This document shows, in pieces, positions 146-64,000 of a DNA stretch of 64,000 bases (position 1 is the stretch's first letter; each line of letters opens with the position of its first letter). This DNA is from Malacoraja senta (Eukaryota). Under the pieces are notes generated by a model. That model was given only the letters and a program-made list of their open reading frames with translations, had not been told where the DNA came from and searched no databases. The position numbers and the translations under genes are program-made. The stretch covers positions 17,918,001-17,982,000 of the forward strand of contig CM075982.1 in the NCBI GenBank assembly GCA_038087875.1, in the 5' to 3' direction.

Positions 146-918
146 TACTGATTTCCCTCTTGATACTGCCTGGAATTTTACGATGTTGTTTTGTGCCAGG
201 GAGGAGATGTGTTTAACTTCTATTTAAGCTCTAATATCCCAGCTGAGGTAATCTGGACAGAATGATCTCAGCTCTTATATCATCCTCAAGCTTGGGTAGA
301 ATAAAAGGCAGGAAACTCGTATGTAGTTTAATACTTATTCTCTGAGGAGATTGGGAGCAGGTGGCAATTAAAATGGAACTAGACAAATCTCCATAAAATA
401 ACTGATGGACCATTAGGAATGGCTAATGTGAGTAAAATAAGTTGGGACATCATGATTGCTGACTGAAACACCTGGCTACACATTTCTCAGTTACTACCCA
501 TGATATTTCAAGTTCCCTCTATTAAAAAAATTTAACCATGGTTGGCAGTGTCAATTTTAGCTTTGCTTTGGGTAGAATTAGCATGGAAGTTTGTTGCCAT
601 TATCGTTTAACCCATTCATAAAAATGCATGGCAAGTGGTCCAGCATCTAAAAGAAAGCAAAAAGATTTGTGTTGGATGGAACATTGCAACATAGGCCAGC
701 TCCTGTATCTGCTTCAGTATTGAGACTTTTGGTGACCGCTTCCTCTATAAGTGACTGATCTGCTCATCAATGAACAAAGCTGTAAAGCTGCAAATGCTTC
801 TTTTGTAGGTGATATTAAAAAAAAAATCCTCTTAGTTTTAGATTTCATTCATATGCTGAATTGTGAGAGTATGAGTAACCACTGATTATGGCAGTAAAGT
901 ATCATTGTAGATATTTGG

Positions 919-978
919 TCGACAAAAATGCTGGAGAAACTAAGCATTGGCGATGTTTCGGGTCGAGACCCTACTACT
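919..978 (-). mobile_element. 60-bp internally deleted Penelope-like terminal-repeat insertion with a 14-bp TSD
   Basis: GACAAAAATGCTGGAGAAACT..GTTTCGGGTCGAGACCCT matches the PLE terminal repeat at 4100-4200 and 23379-23476. It is flanked by TTGTAGATATTTGG at 905-918 and 979-992. Confidence 0.75.
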
Positions 979-1756
979 TTGTAGATATTTGGAATTGGTT
1001 TCAGTATTTGATATTTGTATGGATTGGGAATAATATTGATTCATTGCATCAGGCAACTGTACCATTGCTTGAGTCTACCCAGGTATTACATACACTGTAG
1101 AACTCGGTGATCTTCCTTAGATCATGTTAACTAAATTTTGTGAAATAAATATCAAAATCTTATTTTGTCCATGTTGTAAAGGCCATTTGTAATTGTTAAA
1201 AGGAAGAGACTAATCACATTTTGAATGTCACAGGAAGTCATGGCACTAATTGCTGACATTTTGGTTTCATTCGCCATGCCATGGTACATCACAAGCTTGA
1301 CCTTTTGGTCTTAAGTGTCAGTTTCCTGGTAACCAAGAAAATATATAATTGAATCTGTAGTACATGATTTTCTGGATGAGGAACAAGTGTAATATTGCAG
1401 ATTGAGAAACAATTGGATGAGCTGGTAGCTAAGGGAGGTTTAGGGAAGAGTTATCACACAATAGAATTTTTAGCCTGGGGTCTAAACAAAACAAACAGCA
1501 ACATACAAGTTGAGTGTTAGTTATGGTAGATTGGGAAAACAATCACAAGGAAACATGGAATTACTAAAATTCAAAAATATGTGGGTTACAACAGATCTAT
1601 GATCTGTTTTAAGGGACACAACCAAACATATTAGGAATTCAGCAAAGAAAGACCAAAACCTTGATAACGAAAGAGAAAAGTGGAATACAACTATAATCTG
1701 GCAAAAAACAAAAACAGATCTCACGGGACTAGTGCATGACTAGGAAAGGTTTAGAG

Positions 1757-32290: not shown

Positions 32291-33954
32291 GTTACACTTG
32301 GGCATTGTGCCAATATGTCAGCCCAGAGCATATGCTTAAATATCTGTGGGTTTGAAACATTGTCACACTCCTGAGCCATCGACAGTGATCAATGATTAAT
32401 TCATAGACCCATCAGTATTACTAGACTTTGTCACCTTGGAAGTAGAGCGTATTTGTTAAAATTTAATTATCTGTATTTATTCAATAGTATACATTTTTCT
32501 TTATCACTTAAGTCTTGGAGTGAGCCTATATATTTTGTGCAATGTCTGAATGAGAACGTAATAAGCTGCAGCATTGTAATTAGCATGTCATCCATTGTAA
32601 ACTTTGTACACGCAGTTAAGCAATTGGTTAGTAAAGTAGAAATGAAAATTATTTGCATAAAACAAAATTTTAGAAACACTGAGCAGGTCAGGTCACATCT
32701 GTGGCATAGTGTTAATGTTTCATGTCAAAGACCCTTCAAGAGAACTGGGAAGGAGACAAAAGAAGCTTAAGCTGGAAGGACAGTGGAGGGCAAGTAGTTG
32801 GAATGAGAACGTGGACAAAAACGACAAAGTGATGCAGGTCTTGTGAAATGCTGAGCAGGGTGGGTGTTCTTCCAGAATAATTACACCAACAATTCTGAGT
32901 GTCCTTTATTCCAGTTAACATTGGGGAACCATAATGCTTGGGTGATGAGTCAATAAATAATTGGTTCTTGCACTGAAGTTTTATCCCTTCCTCTCCTGAA
33001 TGTCAACTTGTATAATTCTGCAGCATTTGCCATTTTTGTGGTTTGTTTACTTTGAGGCATCAACTTATCGCTACCTCAAAAAAACACGGGGGAATTTCAC
33101 TGCCAAATGCAAACCTCTCCATGCCCCGTGTTTAATTTCACGGATAATGATCAAGTGTAGAAACTTTCCATTTCTTTCTGGTTTCCACGTTTTTCCAAGA
33201 CCTCTTCTGCACCCACTCCAAAGTCTCCATATCCTCCTTGTACTATGGCGACCAGCACTACCACTAATATTACTAATGTGGCCTAACCAAAGTTTTATAA
33301 AGCTACAAATGACTTCCTAATCTGTATTCTTAATGCCCTGATTTATGAAGGCAAGCATGCTGTACAGTTTCTATCTCACCTATCCACCTGTGATGCGATT
33401 TCATAGAGCTTTAGACTTACACCCCCAGATCCTTCTGTAGTTGTAGCAGTACATCATTTATTGGCAGTAAGAACAATGTATTGTCCCTTATTATTGCGAA
33501 TTGTCTGCACCTAATGTATATTGGTTGATTCCTATATGTGCCCATTTCTATTTAGGTTATGCTTTAGGAAGGATATGGTTGGGTTGCAGAGGGGAGTTTC
33601 AGTGACACCAGGAATGAAGGATTTTGGTCATGTTAAGAGGACGAGATTGTTCTCCTTGGTGCAGAGGAAGTTATGGGAGATGTAATACAAATATAAACTA
33701 GTAGAATAGGAAGGAAGGATTTGTTTCCTTTGGCTGGAAGTGTGATAGCCAGAGGATGATGACTAATTTTAATTGCAAAGAGAATGCACAATTTAAAGCA
33801 GATTTGATATGCTTTGTGATACCTTGCCCGAAAGGACTCGGGAAGAATATCCAATAGTAATGTTCCTTGATCCTTTCAATTTAATGTTTTCTAAACCCTT
33901 ATCAAAGAGTTATAAGCAAAGAGATATATGTAAAGGATACAATATTTATAAGAG

Positions 33955-35798
33955 GGACTGAAGAAAAAGAAATTATTGACACTGTAAAAAAACCTCAAGA
34001 GTAAGAAATCCACAGACTGTCATGATATTGACATGTTTACAGTTAAAAACATTATAGAATGCATAGCAAGACCTTTGACTCATATTTGTAATCAGTCCCT
34101 TCAAACCGGTGTATTTCCCAACAAAATGAAAACAGCAAAAGTTATACCAATATATAAAACTGGAGACAAACATGTACTTTCAAATTACAGACCCATTTCA
34201 TTGCTTCCACAGTTCTCCAAAATACTGGAAAAAATATTTTACACAAGACTGGACGAATTTATCACCAAACATAACATACTGTACGAACAACAATATGGTT
34301 TTAGAGCTAACAGAACAACTTCATCTGCAATTATTGAATTTATAGAAAAAATTACTAAGGCAATAGAAAATAAAGAGTATGCAGTAGGGATTTTTTTGGA
34401 CTTTAAAAAAAGCATTTGACACTGTAGACCACGAGTTATTAATAAAGAAACTACAAAGATATGGCATTAGAGGCATCGCACTATCATGGCTATCCAGCTA
34501 CCTACAGAACCGGGAACAATATGTCGAAATACAAAACCATAAATCACAATTATTGCAGGTTACGTGTGGGGTGCCTCAGGGCTCAGTGCTGGGGCCATTA
34601 TTATTCATTTTGTATATCAATAATATATGTGAAGTGTCAAAAACTCTTGAAACTATTCTCTTCGCTGATGATACTAACTTACTCTGCTGTGGAGACAACT
34701 TGGAACAGCTCCTGGATAGTATGGAAAAGGAATTGAGCAGGATGAAGATCTGGTTTGACGAAAATAAACTCGCATTGAATTTAAGTAAAACAAAATTCAT
34801 AATATTTGGAAATCGATCAACCAACACACAGAAAAAGCTCATGATAAATGGCACAGAAATAGAAAGAGTATCTGAAATAAAATTTCTTGGAGTATTAATT
34901 GACAACAAATTAACTTGGAAATCTCACATCAATTATATTAAAGCCAAAATATCCAAATCAATTGCAATACTGAATAAAGCCAGAGACCTACTAAATCAAG
35001 CCTCCCTGTATATGTTGTACTGCTCCCTCATACTCCCATACATGATCTACTGTGTGGAGGTATGGGGGAACACATACAAAACAAATACACATCCAATCTT
35101 CATCCTCCAAAAAAGAGCAATACGAATTATACATAAAACCACCTACAGACAATCAACAAAACCATTATTTATCAGACTAAAAACATTAAAATTTCAAGAT
35201 CTGACAGATTATAAAACTATCCAAATTATGTTCAAAGCAGCTAATCAGCAATTGCCTTGTAATATCCAGGGGGTGTTCCAATGGAGAGAAAGCAAACACA
35301 GCCTGAGAGGAACCTATATATTCGAAAAACCGGCAATAAGAACTAATGCAAAACTCCATTGTGTTACAGCAAAGGGTGTTAGTCTCTGGAATAACTGCCA
35401 TGATGAGCTGAAAAAATGTAAGATTCTATTCAAACTAAAAACACTTTTCAGAAACAAAAGATTGAATGGTTATGAGCTGGACCAGTGATTTTCTTTTCTG
35501 TTTGGTTATTTCTTGTTTGTGGACTGTTCAACAGATTTTGGGTCCATTTGTTCCCATTATTTTGTTTTTCCATGAAAATGTATAGAAAATAAGAGGGGGT
35601 AGGACCAGAAAAGTTTTCGAACTTCTTCTTACCCCTTTTAAACATGAACGATATTATTTGTATTATTTGAGTTACTTATTTGTTTGTTTTCTTTTGTATT
35701 TTCTTTTATTTTTATTGCTTATAAGTTTATTTGTGTTTGTATTTTTTAACATGTTCAATAAATAAGAACAAAAAAAAACTAAAACAAAAAAAAAAAAG
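33955..35798 (+). mobile_element. Near-intact 5'-truncated AT-rich LINE of the L2/Crack/CR1-group, RT domain to poly(A)
   Basis: PNKMKTAKVIPIYKTGDK..NYRPISLL..QYGFR..DFKK/AFDTVDH..GVPQGSVLGPLLFILYIN..FADDT..KFLGVLIDNKLTW (ORFs 34033..34419 and 34553..35488, joined by a +1 shift in an A7 run). T-rich 3' UTR, AATAAA near 35757 and an A-rich tail to 35797. Confidence 0.9.
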
Positions 35799-40167: not shown

Positions 40168-41046
<879 letters not shown>

Positions 41047-47936: not shown

Positions 47937-49445
47937 CATATAGATACATAGATACATAGAAAATAGGTGCAGGAGTAGGCCATTCGGCCCTTCGAGCCTG
48001 CACCGCCATTCAATATGATCATGGCTGATCATCCAACTCGGTATCCCGTACCTGCCTTCTCTCTATACCCCCTGATCCCTTTAGCCACAACGGCCACATC
48101 TAACTCCCTCTTAAATATAGCCAATGAACTGGCTTCAACTACCCTCTGTGGCAGAGAGTTCCAGAGATTCACCACTCTCTGCGTGAAAAAGTTTTTCCTC
48201 ATCTCGGTCTTAAAGGATTTCCCCCTTATCCTTAAGCTGTGACCCCTTGTCCTGGACTTCCCCAACATCGGGAACAATCTTCCTGCATCTAGCCTGTCCA
48301 ACCTCATAAGAATTTTGTACGTTTCTATAAGATCCCCTCTCAATCTCCTAAATTCTAGCGAGTATAAGCCAAGTCTATCCAGTCTTTCTTCATATGAAAG
48401 TCCTGACATCCCAGGAATCAGTCTGGTGAACCTTCTCTGCACTCCCTCTATGGCTATAATGTCCTTCCTCAGATTTGGAGACCAAAACTGTACGCAATAC
48501 TCCAGGTGTGGTCTCACCAAGACCCTGTACAACTGCAGTAGAACCTCCCTGCTCCTATACTCAAATCCTTTTGCTATGAAAGCTAACATACCATTCGCTT
48601 TCTTCACTGCCTGCTGCACCTGCATGCCTACTTTCAATGACTGGTGTACCATGACACCCACGTCTCGCTGCATCTCCCCATTTCCTAATCGGCCACCATT
48701 TAGATAATAGTCTGCTTTCCTGTTTTTGCCACCAAAGTGGATAACCTCACATTTATCCACATTATACTGCATCTGCCAAACATTTGCCCACTCACCCAGC
48801 CTATCCAAGTCACCTTGCAGCCTCCTAGCATCCTCCTCACAGCTAACACTGCCCCCCAGCTTAGTGTCATCCGCAAACTTGGAGATGTTGCCTTCAATTC
48901 CCTCATCCAGTTCATTAATATAAATTGTAAATAGCTGGGGTCCCAGCACTGAGCCTTGCGGTACCCCACTAGTCACTGCCTGCCATTGTGAAAAGGACCC
49001 GTTTACTCCTACTCTTTGCTTCCTGTTTGCCAGCCAGTTCTCTATCCACATCAATACTGAACCCCCAATACCGTGTGCTTTAAGTTTGTATACTAATCTC
49101 TTATGTGGTACCTTGTCGAAAGCCTTCTGAAAGTCCAGATACAACACATCCACTGGTTCTCCCCTATCCACTCTACTAGTTACATCCTCGAAAAATTCTA
49201 TAAGATTCGTCAGACACGATTTACCTTTCGTAAATCCATGCTGACTTTGTCCAATGATTTCACCACTTTCCAAATGTGCTGCTATCCCATCTTTAATAAC
49301 TGACTCTAGCAGTTTCCCCACTACCGATGTTAGACTAACTGGTCTGTAATTCCCTGTTTTCTCTCTCCCTCCCTTCTTAAAAAGTGGGGTTACGTTTGCT
49401 ACCCTCCAATCCTCAGGAACTACTCCAGAATCTAAAGAGTTTAAA
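47937..49445 (-). mobile_element. Young CR1 (HER1-type) LINE, 5'-truncated, with an uninterrupted 473-aa RT frame
   Basis: ORF 48029..49450: VPEDWRVANVTPLFKKG..NYRPVSLTS..QHGFTKGKSCLTNL..DFQKAFDKVPH..GVPQGSVLGPQLFTIYINELD..KFADDTKL..YCVQFWSP..FFTQRVVNLWNSLP. Ends in (TATCTATG)n octamer repeats typical of CR1. Confidence 0.97.
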
Positions 49446-50019
49446 TTCAAGAAAATTTAAATGCCAGAAATTTAAGAGTAACAACAAAAAGAGATGACGA
49501 CTGCCAGGGCTGGCAGCATTTAAACCATGACCTGTGGGAGCTGATTTGTTGACACACAACCAAAAAAGGCATTTTCACAGCTGCAGACTTCTAATCCCAA
49601 GTTCCCACATTAGAGGAATGAAAGCTTTGAGTCACAACCATTATTGTAGCAGTTCAAGTCCTTTTCTCAAGACAAGGAATTTCTGAGAAATGAGCGTCTG
49701 CAACCAGACTCCATGCACCTCTAGGCAATATAAAGAACATGTAAAGGGATGCAAGAAAACTGCTGTGACCATATCACCTGGCTATTCAAAAGGGCAGTGT
49801 GTTACTGAGAAATATACCCAAACATTCAAGAGAACGCAAAGTGACAAAGAAAAACCCTTATCTTAATGTTAACCTGAGCAATGCCACTTACCTGAAATTG
49901 CCAACCACGCTACTGAATGGGGAAAAGAGCAAGACAACTTTGTCAAACAAATATATTCTCCACAACACCAAGGAGAAGGAAGACAATGATTGAATGATGC
50001 ACATGTAATTAGAGGTTAA

Positions 50020-60855: not shown

Positions 60856-62192
60856 CTCTAATCATACACAATTTGGCCAGATATCTGTTCTATTCTTGGA
60901 GCACAAGAAACAGAAACAATGATGGACAGTTTGACCCTTCGTACCTGCTCCATCATTCAATGACCAAGATCTTTTCCCACAACTATCCGACACTAGCCCA
61001 ATTTCATTCTGCCTACATTGTAATCCATTTACCACAGTTCTACTCATTTGCCTGAATTTGTTAAGAAAACGCAGATGTGATAGCAAACTTTAATAAACAT
61101 AACTACATTCCTATTAAATGCCATTGGTACTGTTCAGAATGGGATTGCCAATAAATGCTAGATTAGAGAAAAAAACAGATAATGCTGGAATAATTCAGTG
61201 GTCAGTCATCTTCTCTGGAAGACATGGATAGGTGATGTTTCACTTCGGGAAGCTTCTTCAGATCCTTGATCACCATCTTTCAGCACAGTAAAGTCTGTAG
61301 AAACAAGACATTTGTATTGTCTTTTTGCTGACTGGATAGCATGCAACAAAAGCTTTTCACTGTACCTCGGTGCATGTGACAATAAACTAAGCTGAACTAA
61401 ACTGAACTGAAATTGCCAACTTATCCCTCCAGAGATGTTGTACCCATGTGGCCTAATATGTAGCGGTTAAATGCAGAAATATACAGGTCGTAGATTTCTT
61501 CCCAATGCGCCAATAATTTATCTGACTTCAACTCCCCACCCATAAATTTCAAGTCATAGGAACAAGAGTAGCCATTCAGTTAAATTATGGCTGATCTGTA
61601 ATTATCCACCTTGGTCCCATAACCCTTGGCTAACAATAATCAATTTCAGTTTTAAAAGGTGATGCTGACAGCTTCCACAGTAGCCTCATTCAGACATAGA
61701 AATAATGCATGGCTCCAGAATGGGGTCAGAGACTCGGAAGCGATATAAAACAGGCACGGCATACAAGCCAGAATGGTTGCATGTACACAATAACAAAGAC
61801 ACATTCATTCAATATTTTTTACGATCTCAGGATGTTCAAAAGCAATTTCAAACTGTTAAATTGCTTCTTTTTTTAATGAACAGTAGTGACTGTTGTAATG
61901 TATGAAACAAACGCATCAATTTAGGAACACCATGATCCCACGAAAAGCAATGTATTAATTAATTGGATCATCTACTTGTGGCGACACAAGAAAGAGCAGA
62001 CTGAAGCTCCGAAACATTGTCTGTCCACTTTCCTCCACAGATGCTGCCTGACACACTAAATTCGTTCAGCTGTTTGGTTTGCTCATCTGTTTGTAGTCTT
62101 GTAAGAGACACATATTGACCAAGATAATGGAAGAACTCTACTGCTCATTGGAGCAGTGTTAGAGGATATCAGGCTTCCTACATTACATCAGT

Positions 62193-62399
62193 CCTCTTCT
62201 TCTTGCGTTTGAGGCAGCAGAAGTCTGCAGCAGGGTGATGCCATCCAGTTCGACATCCGTAGGTGCCCGCTCTAAAAAAGGGCGCATGTTCCGGGTTGGC
62301 GCCAAGCTGAGGCGCAGCTGCTGTCTCTGTTTGTTGTCATTCGCCTGACTGTGGTCAGTTGACAGGGCTCACCATGGGGAGGTCGACAACATGAGCCCC
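62193..62399 (-). mobile_element. 207-bp non-autonomous retroposon with a 5' HDV-like ribozyme, (AGA)n tail and 11-bp TSD
   Basis: TSD ATTACATCAGT (62182-62192) and ATTATATCAGT (62400-62410). The minus-strand 3' end is ...AAACGCAAGAAGAAGAGG. It is inserted into a Deu-SINE tail. Confidence 0.85.
62332..62399 (-). ncRNA. HDV-like (delta/CPEB3-type) self-cleaving ribozyme
   Basis: Minus strand: ^GGGGCUC A UGUUGUCG ACC UCCCCAU GGU GAGCCCU GU CAA CUGAC CACA GUCAG GCGAA UGACAACA. This gives P1 (7 bp, G1-U wobble), P2 (8 bp), P3 (3 bp) with a 7-nt L3, a 1-bp P1.1, P4 (5 bp) and J4/2 GCGAA carrying the catalytic C. Confidence 0.88.
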
Positions 62400-62769
62400 A
62401 TTATATCAGTGGCTACAATTCAAACAATGTTTTGAGGTATTGAGATACTATGAAAGATATCATATGAGTAACCAAGATTTCTGCTCTTTATTGCAATACA
62501 GGGAACCCTGCAGAAAAATTGTCAAATTCCAACATTATCTGGGGTTTAGGCTTTGTTTGCCTGAGATGCTTGTATTTTTTAAGAGCCCAACCAAATGCGT
62601 TGTATAGACTTTTACAAGAAAGATAGGTATTTGGTTAAGGCAGGGCAGAGAGCCTGGTGATCAGGAGACAAACATGTTTCACACACGACTGGTGAAATAA
62701 TTAAATTATTGATTTGAGATGTAATGGTATATACTGAATCAAATATCAGCTGCAACTCATAGCACTGAA

Positions 62770-63040: not shown

Positions 63041-64000
63041 TTTTGTTGCCAACAAAAGGTGCCAGTTTGCATATAATGATTCAATGGTGCGTTATTGTCA
63101 CATGTGCAAATATACAGTGAAATTATTTTCTTCCAAACAGTCCAGTAAGGTATTGCCATATTCAAGTATAATCTCCAGATTAGCAAAGTGTGCAGAAATA
63201 GTCCACTGAGCCTGCATGTAAAAGGCACCCCGTTTTGGCAGTTCCCTCAACACTATTCACAGCTGTACATAAAACTGCAATGAACTTTTTAGAGAAGCCG
63301 GTACCCCTTACCAGCGCATACAGTCACAAGAAAGAGCATTGCCCCTTGGTGAATGTCACAGATGCGGATTGCTTTATCATTATTACAGTGCTGTTCATGT
63401 GAGCTTGTAGTATGCACATTGGATGTTGCAGTTCCACATTACAATCGTGACTAGGCTTCAAAAACGGGTTTACTATTCGAAAACCAATTTGAGCCATAGT
63501 CAAAGGGGCTCCAGAAATAAGAGTCTTTCTCTTTTAGTTATTGTCCAAATGCCCACAACTAGAGGGACAATAACATCAAATGTTATCTTTGAACGCACAT
63601 GTCATCTTAATTTGGAAATATGTTGTTTTTGCTTTTGTTCTGCGGCGTCAAATTCTACCTTTACCACACAAATTCCTTTGCCACACAGATTATTCACGTA
63701 GTGCACCTAATCTGATGGAAATCAACTGCAATCTGCAGATTGGCAACCAATCCTACCTTTACATTCAGCCATTAGAAGGTAAAAATACTGACTCTTGCTC
63801 AATTCATATCGTCCTGACAGCATTACCAATGTCTCAGCAGCTGCATCACCACCACAGTGATGTTATCCTTTTACTGTTACCAAGGAGATTGCCACTGGCA
63901 ACAATGATCCAATGTGCACTCAAATGAAAACAGGTTAGGCCCCAACTCTTGATAACTGAAAGTAGCTCATAAGTAATATTCACAGATGTCTCATGAAGAT

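Follow-up and report, generated by a model that had tools for sequence, protein, structure and literature searches.

We analysed a 64,000-nt stretch of the genome of the skate Malacoraja senta (GenBank assembly GCA_038087875.1, contig CM075982.1, positions 17,918,001 to 17,982,000), hereafter called the window, in which an element of 207 bases occupies positions 62193-62399 on the minus strand. The element begins with 68 nt that fold like the ribozymes of hepatitis delta virus (HDV) and of the CPEB3 gene, ends in an (AAG)n-type tail and lies between target-site duplications (TSDs). It is likely to be a copy of a short non-coding retroposon family that depends on a long interspersed element (LINE), is processed at its 5′ end by its own ribozyme and is copied through its (AAG)n tail. 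In insects, nematodes and trypanosomes, HDV-like ribozymes process the 5′ ends of R2, RTE, LOA and L1Tc/ingi elements and of their short derivatives. The vertebrate cases are, to our knowledge, limited essentially to CPEB3, R2 and an example in a lamprey, and in the literature searched we found no paper connecting HDV-like ribozymes with skates. The parts of the element are listed below, with ribozyme residues numbered from G1 and Pol III standing for RNA polymerase III.

62400-62410, minus strand: TSD on the 5′ side of the element (ATTATATCAGT on the plus strand), where depth drops to the single-copy level
62332-62399, minus strand: HDV/CPEB3-type ribozyme fold of 68 nt, with G1 at 62399 and every helix of the double pseudoknot present
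62399-62393 with 62370-62364, minus strand: P1, GGGGCUC/GAGCCCU, with a G1·U36 wobble
A8, minus strand: J1/2, a single nucleotide
62391-62384 with 62339-62332, minus strand: P2, UGUUGUCG/UGACAACA, eight pairs, the last being G16·U61
62383-62381 with 62373-62371, minus strand: P3, ACC/GGU
62380-62374, minus strand: L3, 7 nt, UCCCCAU
62375, minus strand: A25 in L3 of the window copy, a CpG-decay change; the family has G25, the partner of U20
C22-G37, minus strand: P1.1, one pair; G37-U38 come directly after P1
62358-62345, minus strand: P4, CUGAC/GUCAG
62344-62340, minus strand: J4/2, GCGAA, which includes C57
62343, minus strand: C57, the predicted catalytic cytosine in J4/2, with the same number as in CPEB3 (PMC4836649)
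62205-62331, minus strand: non-coding body, whose middle (about 62270-62319) is found in about fivefold fewer copies than head and tail
62274-62279, minus strand: run of six T (T6) in the sense strand, a potential Pol III terminator, also in the consensus
62193-62204, minus strand: (AAG)n-type 3′ tail, AAGAAGAAGAGG; the last repeat of the consensus is AAG
62182-62192, minus strand: TSD on the 3′ side of the element (ATTACATCAGT on the plus strand)

An earlier note on this DNA, made from the sequence alone, had proposed that the minus strand from 62399 folds into the full nested double pseudoknot of the HDV/CPEB3 ribozymes. This was confirmed, as all helices are present in the canonical nested order (P1 of 7 bp, P2, P3 of 3 bp, P1.1 and P4) and 24 of the 24 proposed pairs are standard pairs. 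P1 is closed by G1·U36 in the window copy, in the family consensus and in a second full copy (L002, described below) alike, and C57 in GCGAA stands as the predicted catalytic cytosine of J4/2, which is C75 in HDV and C57 in CPEB3. The U20/G25 signature of L3 is missing in the window copy, which has U20/A25, whereas it is present in the consensus and in L002. These two residues correspond to U23/G28 of the antigenomic HDV ribozyme, in which the U/A combination is 528-fold slower (PMC3386971); by analogy, the window copy, with G25 lost, probably cleaves slowly or not at all. The minimum free energy of the nested fold of the head was unremarkable (z=-1.1), as expected because the structure is a pseudoknot.

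The element was then followed in public sequencing runs. Logan contigs of six DNA-type runs were placed on the region (X1, X2, X3, X5 and X19, plus the RNA-type X20); each DNA-type run comes from a different coded organism, and two RNA-type runs come from two further organisms. When 31-mers of the element were sampled, 35-41% occurred in the runs of eight coded organisms. Word depth reached 7e4-2.5e5 within 62195-62399 only, compared with about 10-25 in the flanks, and 1296-1853 distinct contigs per run fell on a stretch of 281 nt. The depth of the family is thus about 10^3-10^4 times the single-copy level, a ratio that is not a copy number but indicates an order of thousands; this points to a family of that order of copies in skates. 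Loose ends of contigs accumulated on the 5′ side at 62399/62400 (25+23 contigs in X1 and 51+32 in X19) and on the 3′ side at 62195 (27, 59 and 59 contigs). The agreement of these loose ends with a consensus was only 0.36-0.39, so the flanks are random and the family begins at G1. Both the prediction of a multi-copy interspersed family and the prediction that its copies start at G1 were therefore borne out, the former by the high word depth, the defined ends and the random flanks and the latter by the loose ends and by L002, which also begins at G1. Within the window itself, blastn with a word size of 7 found no other copies, and one 21-kb locus of Leucoraja erinacea (L001) was without a copy.

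The family consensus, taken as the majority base, departs from the window copy at nine positions, three of which lie inside the ribozyme. At plus-strand position 62375, C instead of T made up 172584 of 181420 of the depth in X1 (95%), 47829 of 54304 in X2 (88%) and 15145 of 16695 in X19 (91%), which restores G25. The suggestion that CpG decay turned a family G25 into the A25 of the window copy was thus correct. The change A>G at +62339 gives C61 and hence G16-C61 instead of G16·U61, and T>A at +62352 gives U48 in L4, the loop of P4. With each of G25, C61 and U48, the consensus is at least as good a ribozyme as the window copy, or a better one. G25 and C57 are both located in CpGs, and by CpG decay C57 is T in 6-18% of the family depth (62343 G>A). 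The minor variants at C57, G58, G62 and G16 are CpG transitions, as is typical when copies decay, and no compensatory pairs were seen among them.

A second full element was found at L002:340-539, in a Logan assembly contig, with 92% identity to the reconstructed consensus. It was reached via a phmmer match, P0122, a 56-amino-acid open reading frame (ORF) that is a translated copy of the element; P0122 was also all that a word-indexed search with the alignment found. In L002, a TSD of 10 bp directly precedes G1 (TAAATCGGAT) and recurs behind the tail (TAAATCTGAT). This copy carries G25, U48, C61 and A58, matches RF02682 over its full length below threshold (30.1 bits; gathering score 44), and has the middle and the length class of the window copy. 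It lies antisense, just downstream of a 356-amino-acid ORF (554-1624, minus strand) with dCMP/cytidine-deaminase domains on a contig of 2.1 kb, and the transcript of that gene, being antisense to the element, would not contain the ribozyme fold.

At the locus in the window, the two TSD copies agree at 10 of 11 positions and the element terminates in ...CGCAAGAAGAAGAGG. Position 62194 is C>T in most copies, and the alignments of other copies end at 62195-62198. The folding energy of the body was ordinary (z=0.06). An open frame of 58 codons (62195-62368, minus strand) runs up to the (AAG)n tail and is open in the consensus too; its chance probability is about 0.06 per frame. In a phmmer search of this frame against 1.84e9 proteins, no relative was found except the translated second copy P0122 and a spurious cadherin-repeat protein. 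From its sequence, the element is predicted to have no coding capacity of its own. The earlier note had further held that deletion of the element restores the tail of a Deu-SINE, a short interspersed element (SINE). The empty-site junction does align to 63431-63462, scoring near the 99th percentile of random windows, which points only weakly to such a restored tail; no longer paralogue was found to span the junction. About 100 bp upstream of the ribozyme element, an extremely abundant SINE has its core at 62008-62088; word depth there climbs to 4e5 in the skate runs, and the loose ends run on as GTCTGAAGAAGGGTCCCGACC...; placement of the element in the tail of this SINE is, again, weakly suggested. 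No contig from any run, including a run of the same species, covered 62089-62169, and such holes carry no proof.

Several results weigh against a ribozyme-processed family. In a permissive Rfam scan of 3 kb, RF02682 (HDV-F-prausnitzii) aligned over the full model from 62399 to 62333 with 30.5 bits and E=0.005. However, this score lies under the gathering score of 44 and no curated Rfam model passed, and the models of HDV (RF00094) and CPEB3 (RF00622) gave no match at E<=10. Variation in the pairs was limited to G16-C61 in the consensus versus G16·U61 in the window copy, as seen in two real copies and a majority consensus. Neither of the window's two LINE fragments shares the head or the tail of the element. 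Finally, in raw RNA reads of run X25, which stems from another species, 33 reads in both orientations matched the element and 32 of the 33 continue into other sequence; their 5′ ends showed no pile-up at G1, although this poly(A)-selected library would miss non-adenylated cleaved RNA and is uninformative either way. When the whole window was scanned with Rfam no further ribozymes appeared, and the stricter filters of such large scans lose even the match at 62399.

The Rfam score under the gathering threshold, a fold without covariation data and a descriptor composed after the hit would all be expected if the HDV-like fold were a chance resemblance and the 5′ end of the repeat were set by something else. 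That descriptor asked for a 7-bp P1 with a G·U pair, a P2 of at least 5 bp, a 3-bp P3 and an L3 of 7-8 nt, then a G after P1, a P4 of at least 4 bp, C[GU]AA and the 3′ strand of P2. Across both strands of the 64-kb window it matched the 62399 site only, compared to 0.017 matches per shuffled window in 60 dinucleotide shuffles, a figure to be read as a ballpark only since the hit was known beforehand. Moreover, the RF02682 model starts at the exact 5′ end of the family and the consensus restores the signature residue G25. A scan of JGI metagenome contigs with the 21-nt core of P3, L3, P3′ and P1′ found no skate copies, and it returned two contigs with an unrelated F. prausnitzii-type ribozyme:

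L003:1832-1898, minus strand, and L004:1811-1877, plus strand: HDV-F-prausnitzii-type ribozyme in JGI metagenome contigs, with P2, P4 and J4/2 unlike those of the skate element

This ribozyme passes the Rfam gathering score (47 versus 44 bits), and the family consensus and L002 have the very same core; the consensus core is therefore letter-identical to that of a qualifying member of RF02682, and the window copy departs from it at A25 only. RF02682, the best Rfam match, differs from the skate ribozyme in having GGCUAAG instead of GCGAA as J4/2 and in unrelated P2 and P4 helices, and its source is microbial or metagenomic, without a retroposon context. An alignment of the skate and metagenome ribozymes with MAFFT misaligned P2 and P4 and was excluded from the pair counts. 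The HDV-like fold at 62399 exceeds chance resemblance, and a coincidental origin is very improbable.

The depth along the element was uneven, and head (about 62317-62399) and tail (about 62195-62260) were about fivefold deeper than the middle. Many contigs link the head to the tail with a different middle or none. Therefore, the functional modules are the ribozyme head and the 3′ domain: 68 nt of CPEB3 architecture plus about 15 nt at the extreme 5′ end, and a 3′ domain of about 70-80 nt ending in (AAG)n. Many different head-tail joints, with middles that differ or are missing, would also be expected if the copies were dead-on-arrival products of internal deletion, made repeatedly from a ribozyme-headed LINE, and no self-propagating short family existed. 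However, the middle of the window copy is itself highly repeated (about 4e4 word depth versus 25 for single-copy sequence), and L002, which comes from an independent data set, shares this middle and falls in the same length class. Amplification thus acted on this very form, and we consider repeated deletion without a short family improbable.

Orthologous contigs of two other species (X3 and X5) extend from 62367 and 62372, respectively, through G1 and the TSD to 62700 with 4-6% differences in the flanks. The insertion therefore predates their divergence, and the distance of 4% between the window copy and the consensus is consistent with an old insertion. The window copy is thus old and common to at least three sampled species.

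For the propagation of a ribozyme-processed family we infer the following course. A source copy would be transcribed by read-through, inside a longer transcript of RNA polymerase II, and the ribozyme would cleave immediately 5′ of G1, so that the product RNA would begin with G1 and retain the intact ribozyme. The reverse transcriptase (RT) of a LINE would recognise the 3′ domain and the tail, and target-primed reverse transcription would copy the RNA and produce the TSDs of 10-11 bp. In place of a promoter, the element would thus probably rely on cutting itself free from host transcripts.

As the earlier note had stated, the element has no tRNA, 7SL or 5S head, since no such similarity was found in it. 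A classical Pol III SINE was ruled out by this and by the T6 run in the sense strand, and 'bipartite non-autonomous LINE-type retroposon' is a better name than the loosely worded 'SINE'. The main rival explains the sharp end at G1 by transcription that starts there, driven by an internal promoter within the first ~80 nt, similar to Pr77; the ribozyme fold would then be secondary or redundant. In L1Tc/NARTc the same 77 nt are both promoter and HDV-like ribozyme (PMC3383444), and the present data cannot tell a cleaved end from an initiated end. Against an internal promoter stand the lack of a Pol III-type head and the position of the T6 run inside the element. In addition, the conserved module matches a complete ribozyme base for base, with G25, C57 and every pair retained in the consensus, a sign of selection on the fold in the source copies. 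Initiation at G1 is therefore unlikely to account for the sharp 5′ end, and processing by the ribozyme is preferred.

The design of a short non-autonomous non-LTR element with an HDV-like ribozyme at its 5′ end is already known from NARTc/L1Tc and from the R2 SIDEs (PMC3185411, PMC4035085, PMC3414825). In NARTc/L1Tc and their relatives (RIME/ingi, SIDER) the ribozyme frees the RNA from co-transcripts (PMC3185411, PMC4035085, PMC3383444). NARTc is a short non-autonomous element in which only the two ends of a LINE are kept, the 5′ one with its ribozyme and the 3′ one, as is probably so in the skate element. NARTc/L1Tc differ in their protozoan host, in Pr77 also being a promoter and in their poly(A) tails, and share no sequence relation with the skate family, which has a vertebrate host, an (AAG)n tail and a ribozyme of CPEB3 type. 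The R2 SIDEs of Drosophila are likewise internally deleted and non-autonomous, with a 5′ HDV-like ribozyme and the 3′ part that binds the RT (Eickbush & Eickbush 2012, PMC3414825); they are site-specific in the 28S rDNA and need co-transcription with rRNA, whereas insertions of the skate family are scattered, with TSDs that vary and measure 10-11 bp. Of the features by which NARTc and the R2 SIDEs are recognised, the skate family shows the following: it is multi-copy and non-coding, it has defined ends and TSDs, and its 5′ end is the predicted cleavage site. Bipartite LINEs of the RTE and Vingi clades resemble it in combining a 5′ end with a 3′ end, in their vertebrate hosts and in the suggested link to a 5′ ribozyme (Kojima 2018, PMC5786205). 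Within this known design the skate family would be a new member, marked by its vertebrate host, dispersed insertion, very short length and CPEB3-type architecture.

The architecture is like that of the mammalian CPEB3 ribozyme. In the numbering of the latter, 68 nt include U20, C22, G25, C57 and a J4/2 of 4 nt (PMC4836649). The skate family shares with it the length of 68 nt, G1·U36, a J1/2 of a single nucleotide, a 3-bp P3 and a 7-nt L3 with U20, C22 and G25, and further G37-U38, one G-C pair as P1.1, a short P4 and GCGAA with C57 as J4/2. With RF00622 silent, the skate element resembles CPEB3 in architecture only. Moreover, CPEB3 is a single-copy mammalian intronic element, whereas the skate ribozyme heads a retroposon that cartilaginous fish carry in thousands of copies. 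It is conceivable, if doubtful, that the mammalian CPEB3 ribozyme is the exapted head of such a retroposon or LINE lineage and that the skate family is its surviving mobile relative. If so, this would be the long-sought origin of CPEB3 from a mobile element; in any case the family would be a concrete candidate for the type of element behind the mammalian CPEB3 ribozyme. A vertebrate family headed by a CPEB3-type ribozyme would also supply abundant natural ribozyme variants. If it is indeed processed by its ribozyme, the family would show how short retroposons can manage without a Pol III promoter, and in vertebrates promoter-less short retroposons released by a ribozyme would stand beside Pol III SINEs as an alternative. 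Active copies in sense orientation within genes would cut host transcripts, and orientation bias and decay are thus testable genome-wide.

Our guess for the partner LINE is a member of the Vingi/ingi or RTE clade. The two LINE fragments of the window are:

48029-49450, minus strand: CR1-like RT remnant, whose best named relatives are Leucoraja erinacea proteins with 87-93% identity
about 33900-35540, plus strand: second RT remnant, from a different, AT-rich LINE with frameshifts

Both were considered as partner and rejected, as neither has a tail in common with the element. Elsewhere in the window, an uninterrupted ORF of 286 codons at 40186-41046 (plus strand) encodes a 14-3-3 domain that is complete (Pfam E 2e-97); this is an intronless 14-3-3 gene or else a processed retrocopy.
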